Assembly (NCBI GenBank): GCA_001643675.2
Contig: LSRY02000046.1
Span: 62,001 to 126,000 of the forward strand
Reading direction: 5' to 3'
Source: Monocercomonoides exilis PA203
Lineage: Eukaryota; Protista; Preaxostyla
DNA: 64,000 nt
Within the stretch, counting starts at the first letter, position 1. Every line of letters starts with the position of its first letter. The notes below the pieces were generated by a model that saw only the letters and a program-made list of their open reading frames with translations, was not told the origin of the DNA and did not search any database. The translations under genes and the position numbers were made by a program. Shown here in pieces: positions 23,888 through 27,409 of the stretch.

Positions 23888-25637
23888 TATTTGATGGAAT
23901 GGAGTTGAGAAGGAAATTTTTTTGCATCTGTCAACTTCGGTTCTTGTTAGTCTTTCGTAACGCTTTATTCATATTTATTTGAATTATGAAAAGATAGTTA
24001 TTAAAGATTGTCATTTTATTCATTTGAAATGAGAAATTGAAAGTTTTGAATTATTGTATGAGTTTTTATCGATTCTGGAATAACCCAATTGTACACATTG
24101 AGTTTTGTGGGGACGGGGAAAATGGTTGTTGCATGTTTTTTCAATATTCAATTGAATCAAGCATATAAAGAAAGAAAGAAAGAGAAAGAGAAAGGGAAAA
24201 AAAGTTCATATAGAAAGGAGAAAACATCCGAGCATGAACATTTGAGATGTGATCAAAGATGTTTTTATTCTTGTTCGATAATTTTTTAGTTGAAAGATTG
24301 ATACCTTTTATTTTCTCTTTTATTTCTCAGTGCATTCTAATTATTGCATCTCAAGTCACTTCTTTGAATCTTTTGTTTATCATCTTTCAAAAGCAATTAT
24401 GATCTCTTCTTTGCATTCTCTGTTTTCATCAAGGTGTTGATATTCATCATTTTTGAAAAAGGTATTTATCACAATTTCAATTCAGTGCCTTTTGTTAAAC
24501 TATCAAGGGTTGTATCACAAAACAGATTTATTGTTTGTATTTTATCTGTGTGGATGCTTTTTTCATTTCCATGGTGAACATTGTTTAAAAGAGAATGCTT
24601 TGTTATTTAGTGAGGTTATATTGCACCATGCCGAAAAAATCAAAAGAAGATGACTCTTTCGAAATTTTGAGTTCAGAAATGAACTTGATTCCCGCGTATT
24701 CGCTTTCAATTGATATATTTCTTCTTTTAATTCGGAATGGAAATTATCTTCATCAAAAATGTTCCTCTTGATTGTTATTGTGAACTGTCTTGTTGATTGA
24801 AAGAAAAAGTGATGAGTATTTTTTGTTGGAGATTGCGGGATCAATTTTCTGTTTAACACCATGCAAAAATGGATATGATTTAACGGGAAAAATTCGTTCT
24901 AATTATTTTATAGGTTCGAAACAGATTAATAAGCACAAAAAGAAGTAACGATATTAATTGATAAATGGGATAGAATACCTTTTCTTTTCATCAAAAATCT
25001 TCTTCAATTGATTTCGGTAATTGAGTTTGTTTGCTTTTTCTTTATTAACAGAAAGAAGTTCTTTGAAGTGAATTATTGACATTTTCATCTCTCTCTTTTT
25101 GAAATTTTCCTAAAATGATTGCGAGCAAATGAAATGTTTTTTCGAAGGCAAATGGAACTTGCGAAAAAAATGTTTATGGTTTTTCTAAAAACAGTTTTGT
25201 TGCGATACAGCAAAACCATTCGTGTTAATTTTCAGGTTAGTCTTCAAAACTCTCACTCCACTCTTCTTATGAGTATCGTTTTTTTCAACTTTACAGAATT
25301 GAATGAAACAAAAAAAAGAAGGGGGGCCTTGCAATTTGAAAGACCAATCTTCAAAACCGTTGGGATTAAAATTGAAACATTTATAGCCTATTTGTGTGCA
25401 TAATGGGGATGTATAAAAGAAAACAAGAAGAACTTAAGATATACGTTGAAATAAAAGAGGTCAATTGAAAGCATTATTTGAATTGAAGAAGATTGAAATT
25501 TCATGCAGTCTTTCATATAATGTGAAAAATTGAATACATTGTTCAAGTGCAATATCTTGATGGTGTTGAAAATGCGTGCTTTGAAAATTAGGTAAGATTC
25601 AAGAGAGCTGGTACCAAAAATTCAATAAAAAATTAGC

Positions 25638-25721
25638 AAAAAATAAATAGGGTCTAGTGGGAATTGAACCCATACCCTAGCACAATGGTCGGACATCAAC
25701 CAACCACTAGACCATTATCGC
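25638..25721 (-). ncRNA. tRNA-like putative Pol III transcript inside the Merlin element
   Basis: A box TGGTCTAGTGG (25714-25704) and B box GGTTCAATTCC (25670-25660) are 33 nt apart, as in tRNA genes. There is a T-arm-like hairpin TGGG-TTCAATT-CCCA and a T6 run at 25643-25638. No canonical cloverleaf. Confidence 0.55.
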
Positions 25722-25761
25722 ACCCCCATGGGGTTCTATTTGAAATTTTTCTTTTATTGCC

Positions 25762-25850
25762 AACCCTAACCCTAAAAAAAATTTTGCTAAGAAAAACCTA
25801 AAAATTTTGGTCAAAACCCTTAAAAGAAGCACTCTGTGCAAACCCTATTA
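25762..25850 (+). repeat. Telomere-like / telo-box repeats (AACCCTAACCCTAA and degenerate AAACCCTA copies)
   Basis: aaccctaaccctaa at 25762-25775, aaaaacctaa at ~25793, aaaacccttaa at ~25813 and aaaccctat at ~25840. Confidence 0.55.
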
Positions 25851-25979
25851 CAAAAGAAACTGATATTAATTTAATAAATGATTTGATCTCTTTTTTAAAA
25901 TGCAATTTTCGTGAAAATAGAAATAGAAAAATACGATATGAATAAAATTCTTATCTTTAATAAGGACTGATTGAAAAGA

Positions 25980-27026
25980 TTATTGAAAAAAATCTTTTCT
26001 TGTTCGTTTTTCAGGGACGAAGTCACTTGCATCTTCTCCATCTCCTGCACCGAAACTTAAGCTTTCTTCCTCGCTTTCTTCTTTGCTTTCGTCTTCATCT
26101 GAATTCAAGTCTTCATCCTCACTTTCTGATTCGTCATACAAAGATTCAATTGTGCGAACGTATTCATCATCAGTGTAATCCTTTATTGCTTGCAGCAAAT
26201 CTTCCAAAGTTTTGTGGAGTATTTTTTGAAATATGAATCCTGCTAAATACTCCTCGATATATCCTTCCCTCACTCCATAAACTGGCATGTATCTTCGAAT
26301 CCTAGCCCACGTTCCTTCAATAAGATTTGTACATGCGTTTGTTTTTTTGTTTTTGTACGTTTTCGAATGATTAACAGTTAGATGAATATATCCATGCTTT
26401 GGAAGAGATCGATATCCTTTCCATTGATCTGACATAATCGTTGTTCCAGGAAGAACACTTCTTTTGATAAGTGGAATTAAAACACGTTCTGATCTGCTGT
26501 TAATAATGAAAACATTAAGTTTTCCTTCAGTTTCTTTTGTGCGTTCAATTAATCCAAACATCCATATCTGTTTTTTTCTCCTTCCTCTTTTATATTTTCT
26601 TCTCCTCCATATTGCTTCGTCAACTTCAACGATTTTCCCTTCGCCACCCATCATTCTTGGATGTTGAAGCAAAAACAACTCTGCAGATCTCCTGATCATT
26701 CTGTACCATTCAACAATTGTTTGATACGATATTCCAGTGAGTGTTTAAGACTGAAACTGAGACAATCCACAATTCCAAAACAGTATTAACATGAAACATG
26801 TTGATATACGTAACCGAGTTTTTTCAAAAATTGTTCCTTTTTTCACATTAACAGAAACTCTACAGCTTTTGCATCTGAATCTTCTGCAAGAAGAGTTGTC
26901 CCGTTGAAGTATCATTTTTTTCTTGCATGAACTGCACTCCATGAAAGATGGAAATATATCATGTTCAATAGCATATTTCCATGTTTTTTCATCATTCAAA
27001 AAGATCTCCAAAAGTTTACTTGTCAT
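25980..27026 (-). pseudogene. Merlin/ISXO2-like DDE transposase with one in-frame TAA (26747-26745)
   Basis: N-terminal zinc ribbon CSSC...CKSC, then in the same frame VEVDE, MSDQWKGY, TVNHS, TNLIEGTW and YLAGF, followed by an acidic tail. ORFs 26745-27026 and 25980-26699 share a frame. Confidence 0.9.
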
Positions 27027-27409
27027 TTTTAATGGTTCAGATCAATTGGTACCAGGACACTTGAATTATACCGAAAATTATTTGGCAAATGTTGATATGT
27101 GGATAAATATAATTGTTGGAATCATACAAACAAGAATATGAATTTATAATTGATATTGTTTCGTTAATTCGATGCGAAGATGTCATTGCGAAAAAATGTT
27201 TTTTTCTAAACTGAAGAAAGGATCATCTTTGAATTAAATCATAAATATGAGTTCAAAATTGATGGTTGAGTTGATCAATAAAGATATAATGTTTATTTTT
27301 GTCTGACAAAATTTCGAACGCAAATTGTCATGGAAATGAAAACATATCAGGCATGCTTTGATGTTTTGTCATGCTATTTCAAACTGTAAAAAAAAAGTGT
27401 TTTTGGTTG

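Follow-up and report, generated by a model that had tools for sequence, protein, structure and literature searches.

A probable tRNA-Pro derivative with Pol III-type promoter boxes in the 3' end of a Merlin transposon lineage of Monocercomonoides exilis

Merlin elements are, to our knowledge, described as TIRs plus a transposase alone. Pol III promoter modules in mobile DNA are known from SINEs, whose movement needs the transcript, while in yeast, tDNA barriers and B-box sites serve as barriers or insulators. Homing to Pol III genes is, in the literature searched, described for retrotransposons only. In the case of Ty3 and TRE5-A, such targeting needs intact boxes and bound TFIIIB/TFIIIC (PMC5911963). 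No description of a Merlin-borne, tRNA-like Pol III unit was found in the literature searched, and the portion of the Monocercomonoides exilis genome paper considered here (PMC8767320) handles repeats in bulk, with no mention of tRNA or Merlin. The locus described below lies in a window of 64,000 nt, i.e. the whole stretch of DNA that was analysed (M. exilis PA203, contig LSRY02000046.1, positions 62,001 to 126,000), and comparisons were made across the M. exilis genome (82.3 Mb in 101 contigs) as well as with read contigs obtained from four DNA runs of one sample. Within the window, the host element of the cassette, referred to as family W, comprises the following features.

25591–27072, minus strand: complete Merlin/IS1595 element of family W, 1482 bp, delimited by its TIRs, the limits of homology among copies and its TSD
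25583–25590, no strand: left TSD copy, GAAAATTA, 8 bp, the same as the right copy
27073–27080, no strand: right TSD copy, GAAAATTA, 8 bp
25591–25617, no strand: 3' TIR, 27 bp, its outer end kept in 10 of 10 copies
27046–27072, no strand: 5' TIR, 27 bp, recognized by inverted-repeat pairing
25980–27026, minus strand: Merlin transposase frame, consisting of ORFs 26745–27026 and 25980–26699 in one frame, identified by Pfam and frame reading

Because its TIRs are 27 bp long, its 8-bp TSD is perfect and its reading frame encodes a DDE domain of the IS1595 type (Pfam DDE_Tnp_IS1595, PF12762; 84.5 bits, E 1e-23), the element at 25591–27072 is a bona fide Merlin. Its transposase frame, which closes with a stop codon at 25980–25982 on the minus strand, is divided in the assembly by an in-frame TAA at 26745–26747; this codon reads TTA in the contigs of three of the four DNA runs and TAA in one, and on that reading at least some copies of family W may encode an intact transposase. 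Among proteins, the best match to this transposase carries an M. exilis annotation. Candidate Merlin transposase matches number more than 880 in the M. exilis genome, a Merlin expansion on a very large scale. The 3' subterminal region of the element holds the cassette and several associated motifs, some of which are shared with Y and Y2, two diverged relatives of family W.

25650–25721, minus strand: 72-nt cassette without a cloverleaf fold, probably tRNA-Pro-derived as judged from sequence, alignment and covariance model
25704–25714, minus strand: A box, cassette positions 8–18, with the same letters as the A box of the genome's tRNA-Pro
25660–25670, minus strand: B box, cassette positions 52–62, with the same letters as the tRNA-Pro(TGG) B box
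25638–25649, minus strand: T-rich trailer that closes with T6, a run resembling a Pol III terminator
25724–25733, no strand: CCCCATGGGG palindrome upstream of the cassette, containing the point 25729/25728, 8 nt before cassette base 1, at which foreign transposons sit in other copies
25751–25758, minus strand: AATAAAAG, cassette-relative positions -37 to -30, without variation among W, Y and Y2
25762–25775, minus strand: two telomere-type TTAGGG units, subterminal, their core invariant in W, Y and Y2

The anatomy of the cassette is as the original prediction had it, with the 72-nt unit, its A and B boxes, its position on the transposase strand 258 nt past the stop codon, and a distance of 20 nt between its T-run and the inner edge of the TIR (25617) all found at the places given for them. 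The palindrome at 25724–25733 is likewise real, as is a perfect 10-bp inverted repeat (25651–25660 / 25704–25713) that pairs the A-box segment with the 3' end of the unit and that is used by the minimum-energy fold of the W cassette (-27.2 kcal/mol, z = -2.7 vs shuffles). The T6 run lies 6 nt past the cassette 3' end, and the spacing from A to B box equals that in the genome's real tRNA-Pro genes. Since the A-box 11-mer followed at tRNA spacing by a B box was matched 15 times in the genome vs 0 times in a reversed control, the box pattern is more than chance; every one of the 15 falls in a copy of this cassette or in a tRNA-Pro gene. The A found at position 49 of the cassette (window 25673) occurs in this copy alone, with C in the other nine copies and in the contigs of all four DNA runs, and the A is either a private variant or an assembly error. 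Upstream, AATAAAAG may represent either a TATA-like element or a motif resembling a poly(A) signal. The TTAGGG units lie ~45 nt upstream of the cassette and could provide a candidate site for a Myb/telomere-repeat protein or the transposase.

Although the cassette shares with tRNA genes A and B boxes at canonical spacing and an oligo-T terminator, it is not a cloverleaf tRNA gene, as judged by ARAGORN, Rfam and the broken acceptor and anticodon stems. ARAGORN reported 0 tRNA genes both in the window and in six cassette copies, Rfam returned no tRNA or other family at gathering score for the W cassette, and a permissive Rfam scan (E up to 10) had no tRNA among its matches to that cassette. By eye, the acceptor pairs at three of seven positions and the anticodon stem is broken, which agrees with the earlier reading that no stem of either kind exists in tRNA register. 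Several lines of comparison point instead to descent from one isotype. Aligned to tRNA-Pro(TGG), the cassette shows 52 identical positions in 76 columns, with a score of 22, where shuffles give -9.5 +/- 4.3 and none of eight other isotypes exceeds 9; the tRNA sample for this isotype comparison was incomplete and partly picked by shared motif. With a covariance model built on the cassette, the hit to tRNA-Pro(TGG) is full-length (27 bits, E 6e-4), whereas other tRNAs are hit over the T arm only. The trailer, too, agrees in its first bases with what follows real tRNA-Pro(TGG) genes on the 3' side. Compared with tRNA-Pro, the cassette has a scrambled anticodon arm and acceptor 5' strand and lacks one base of the acceptor 3' strand. 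It is therefore likely, on these sequence comparisons, that the cassette derives from tRNA-Pro(TGG), its closest relative in this genome, and this origin is held short of proven because the isotype sample is incomplete.

Within the genome, the cassette occurs in 10 copies of 90–100% identity, each followed by the same TIR and every one located within a Merlin element or one of its 278–400-bp MITE derivatives. Seven of the elements are complete (two of 1482 bp, four MITEs of 399–400 bp and one of 278 bp), and all seven have a perfect 8-bp TSD that flanks the whole element and not the cassette. In agreement with this, contig depth over unique flank is ~10x at the cassette and ~3x at the transposase. 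Decay is seen in single copies (L009, L010). The cassette is a fixed, inherited part of family W, as the original prediction had proposed, and moves with the element and its MITEs; it was encountered neither as a single copy nor in a setting outside Merlin with TSDs of its own. An origin as a SINE or a private insertion is ruled out by the Merlin context of all 10 copies and by the whole-element TSDs, and the SINE traits of an own TSD and a retroposition tail are displayed by none of the 10.

The 60–70% diverged relatives Y (L005:175–290) and Y2 (L087:1525–1625) keep the unit along with its T-run and match W across the whole 3' subterminal region at ~60% identity. Between W and Y/Y2, identity is 73–91% in the A box, 73–82% in the B box and 80–90% in the 3' arm; the flanks stand at about 60% and the middle of the unit at 38%. 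The A box, B box, 3' arm and T-run are conserved above background, a pattern that fits constraint on promoter parts. Because W and Y/Y2 agree in the non-cassette sequence upstream of the unit about as closely as in the cassette taken whole, selection on the boxes would rest on few positions.

A comparable unit resides in family X (L015), a sister Merlin family whose transposase is 51% identical to that of W and which has a similar TIR and the TSD TAACATAA. Situated at the same relative place as the W cassette, the X unit is 89 nt long (L015:2459–2547, followed by T7), and includes an A-box-like motif, a B box, the T7 run and a 10-bp terminal stem (fold z = -4.4); it is represented by 19 genomic copies, most of which were examined over 35–80 nt only. 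T-runs thus lie 3' of the Y, Y2 and X cassettes as well. The X unit has no match in ARAGORN or in Rfam, whether at gathering or at permissive E-values, and is missed by the cassette covariance model, what W and X have in common being a 9-mer and the layout. On the transposase tree, W, X and L014 form a single branch (support 100/99) separate from 25 cassette-less Merlins, with L014 (Y-like) counted as a cassette carrier by assumption, as its unit lies beyond the sequence examined; the X transposase is ~1 substitution per site from that of W. A relaxed box scan together with the covariance model detected no cassette in the 25 other M. exilis Merlin loci, and none was seen in two foreign Merlin relatives (four contigs; transposases 40–41% identical). 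Judging from these sequences, the W and X units may reflect either one ancient acquisition or two captures at the same spot.

Evidence that bears on how cells perceive the cassette comes from other transposons. In 3 of the 10 copies, W homology breaks off 8 nt ahead of unit base 1 or close to that point, and these breaks correspond to three independent insertions, belonging to two foreign DNA transposon families, at or near the -8 position of W cassettes. On contig C8 (C8:99308–100994; L007:1–1500 with L013), the inserted element is 1687 bp long, has 42-bp TIRs and encodes a pogo-type DDE_1 transposase; it sits exactly between the equivalents of window positions 25729 and 25728, and the rest of the Merlin resumes on its far side. 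The TIR end of this pogo-like family occurs 14 times in the genome, and 5 of the 14 sit 2–8 nt upstream of a Pol III-type unit, namely two tRNA-Val genes, one tRNA-Thr, one further tRNA and one W cassette. The other two interrupted W copies, on C17 and C14, abut an end of the second family. The C17 junction is at the -8 point, and in C14, a decayed W copy, it now falls within the 5' end of the unit, a position that a small deletion after insertion would explain. Ends of the second family finish in AAGTTCTA, and a B box follows in 5 of 28 cases (tRNA-Pro, another tRNA, two W cassettes and one X cassette). At least two DNA transposon families sit 2–9 nt upstream of tRNA genes far above chance. 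Among X copies, at least 4 of 19 have a foreign junction 4–11 nt upstream, and in L014 a pogo-like relative is placed ~10 nt upstream of the expected unit start. The insertion sites have no common sequence, only a common position relative to the unit. Independently of the assembly, the read contigs show loose ends with a foreign TIR at 25728/25729. A further transposon-like loose end at 25728, obtained from one DNA run, is absent from the loci examined and from the assembly, and could stem from a copy that was not assembled or from two contigs blended into one. Additional loci of the homing transposons are L057:806–1496, L079 and L084.

The cassette looks like a working Pol III-type unit, since tRNA-homing transposons have inserted on its upstream side in the way seen at genuine tRNA genes, and this likeness is an argument that it counts as a Pol III gene for the cell. 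From the homing insertions and the parallel with Ty3 and TRE5-A, we infer that the W cassette assembles Pol III factors in vivo.

The explanation that best accommodates these data, and that is held with moderate confidence, is that a tRNA-Pro-derived Pol III unit is inherited in the Merlin 3' end, is recognized as a Pol III gene and most likely acts in cis. According to this proposal, an ancestral tRNA-Pro gene would have lost its cloverleaf while keeping a complete type-2 Pol III unit (A box, B box and oligo-T terminator), and the unit would have been inherited in the 3' subterminal region of one M. exilis Merlin lineage. The most likely occupancy would be TFIIIC on the boxes and TFIIIB upstream, as at a tRNA gene, with factor binding itself suggested by the analogy with targeted tRNA genes. 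The value to the transposon, if any, would be exerted at the level of DNA or chromatin: an open site, bound by factors and acting like a barrier 20 nt from the TIR, could keep the end of the element accessible or unsilenced, and a transcript of ~85 nt would be a by-product. That the cassette benefits the transposon at all is speculative. A broader version of the idea, in which the Merlin lineage keeps the Pol III unit as a working module, be it an anti-silencing element, an insulator or a small RNA, and Pol III-homing DNA transposons mistake it for a tRNA gene, is put forward tentatively.

Three other explanations have to be weighed against this one, the foremost being that the cassette is a neutral passenger, i.e. 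that tRNA-Pro was captured once by an ancestral Merlin and that its boxes still bind Pol III factors without any benefit. The free decay of single copies (L009, L010) and flanks that are about as conserved as the whole cassette are what neutrality would lead one to expect, and the insertions at -8, which cut the cassette and the 3' TIR off from the rest of the element, represent a cost and not a benefit. It also accords with neutrality that covariation is lacking and every variant breaks a pair. However, the unit is kept in W, Y and Y2 and in 4/4 of the 400-bp MITEs, a Pol III-like unit stands at the same place in X, and the boxes and T-run persisted while the middle of the unit fell to 38% identity, and a purely neutral history is held possible but less likely. 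The pairing data weigh at the same time on a second explanation, the main idea of the original prediction, in which the transposon encodes a small RNA, a Pol III transcript whose 10-bp terminal stem, or alternatively a 7-bp stem stacked on the T arm, would let it act as a regulator, a decoy or a transposase partner. The W and X units fold better than shuffles (z = -2.7 and z = -4.4, respectively), in both of them the 3' end pairs with a 5' segment at or beside the A box in a 10-bp stem, and the 3' arm is 80–90% conserved (W vs Y/Y2). The original prediction went further in regarding the re-paired structure as selected, a claim that received no support. Across five W variants plus Y and Y2, no pair is altered on both sides and all departures break pairs, and in Y both arms changed in parallel, thereby breaking two pairs. 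Covariation, which the original prediction named as a check, is absent from these seven distinct sequences, which include too few divergent ones for its absence to count against a structure. An inner hairpin, which the prediction had called possible, is present in W but is kept in neither Y nor Y2. Moreover, a perfect inverted repeat can come from templated correction of a quasi-palindrome, without selection, and the 10-bp repeat could reflect that process instead. A structured small RNA is, in sum, unlikely.

A third explanation would place the unit within the transposase mRNA, as a tRNA-like minihelix in the 3' UTR that is cut by RNase P/Z to form an mRNA 3' end, in the manner of mascRNA at MALAT1. 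The cassette does lie on the transposase strand, downstream of the stop codon by the 258 nt noted above, and a weak Rfam mascRNA-menRNA alignment spans exactly 25651–25713. However, that match reaches 14.7 bits vs a gathering score of 42.5 (E = 4.5), by which membership in the mascRNA-type family (RF01684) is ruled out; MITEs that have no transposase keep the unit all the same; and the positions of the homing insertions follow the ancestral tRNA start, as would be expected of a Pol III gene. This explanation is accordingly given very little credence. Returning to the inherited Pol III unit, a TFIIIC/Pol III site acting on DNA, the alternative raised in the original prediction, fits better than a structured regulatory RNA, because the parts conserved above background are the A box, B box, 3' arm and T-run. 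There are points against it too: the homing transposons might read A/B-box DNA directly, without a bound complex, and a purely DNA-level role does not account for the conservation of the 3' arm or for the 10 bp that this arm forms with the A-box segment.

The wider interest of the locus is that a cut-and-paste transposon keeps a Pol III module in W, Y, Y2 and all MITEs, with a comparable unit in a sister family. If TFIIIC/TFIIIB bind the module, it would offer a naturally occurring example of a DNA transposon equipped with a chromatin-organising site of its own. The homing transposons, for their part, offer a built-in readout of which tRNA-like sequences the cell treats as Pol III genes, and their insertions make it possible to test, from sequence, how promoters are recognized in a mitochondrion-less protist that has hardly been studied.

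Set beside the systems that it most resembles, the cassette-bearing Merlin combines familiar parts in an arrangement of its own. Like canonical eukaryotic Merlin/IS1595 elements, family W has a DDE_Tnp_IS1595 transposase, ~27-bp TIRs and an 8-bp TSD, but it carries in addition a Pol III-type unit, whereas the 25 other M. exilis Merlins sampled and the two foreign ones are without one. As in tRNA-derived SINEs, a tRNA-derived A/B-box segment lies within a mobile element and multiplies along with it; SINEs, however, reverse-transcribe their own Pol III transcript, have the tRNA head at the 5' end and make their own TSDs, whereas the Merlin cassette is located inside a cut-and-paste element by the 3' TIR and ends at its own terminator. 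The capture of host genes by Pack-type elements is similar in that a copy of a host gene lies between TIRs and spreads with the element, but the Merlin piece is a whole small Pol III unit kept in W, Y, Y2 and all MITEs, and not a one-off fragment. With an ordinary tRNA pseudogene the cassette shares its probable derivation (here from tRNA-Pro), broken acceptor and anticodon stems and a failure to be recognized by tRNA finders; it differs in that its boxes, spacing and terminator are intact, the boxes being identical to those of live tRNA-Pro genes, and in being mobile within a transposon. Finally, the A and B boxes of the cassette are predicted here to be able to recruit TFIIIC/TFIIIB regardless of any RNA, as at tDNA and ETC barrier-insulator sites, which is the role favoured here. 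ETC sites are not targeted by Ty3 (PMC5911963), whereas the start region of the Merlin cassette is hit by homing transposons.
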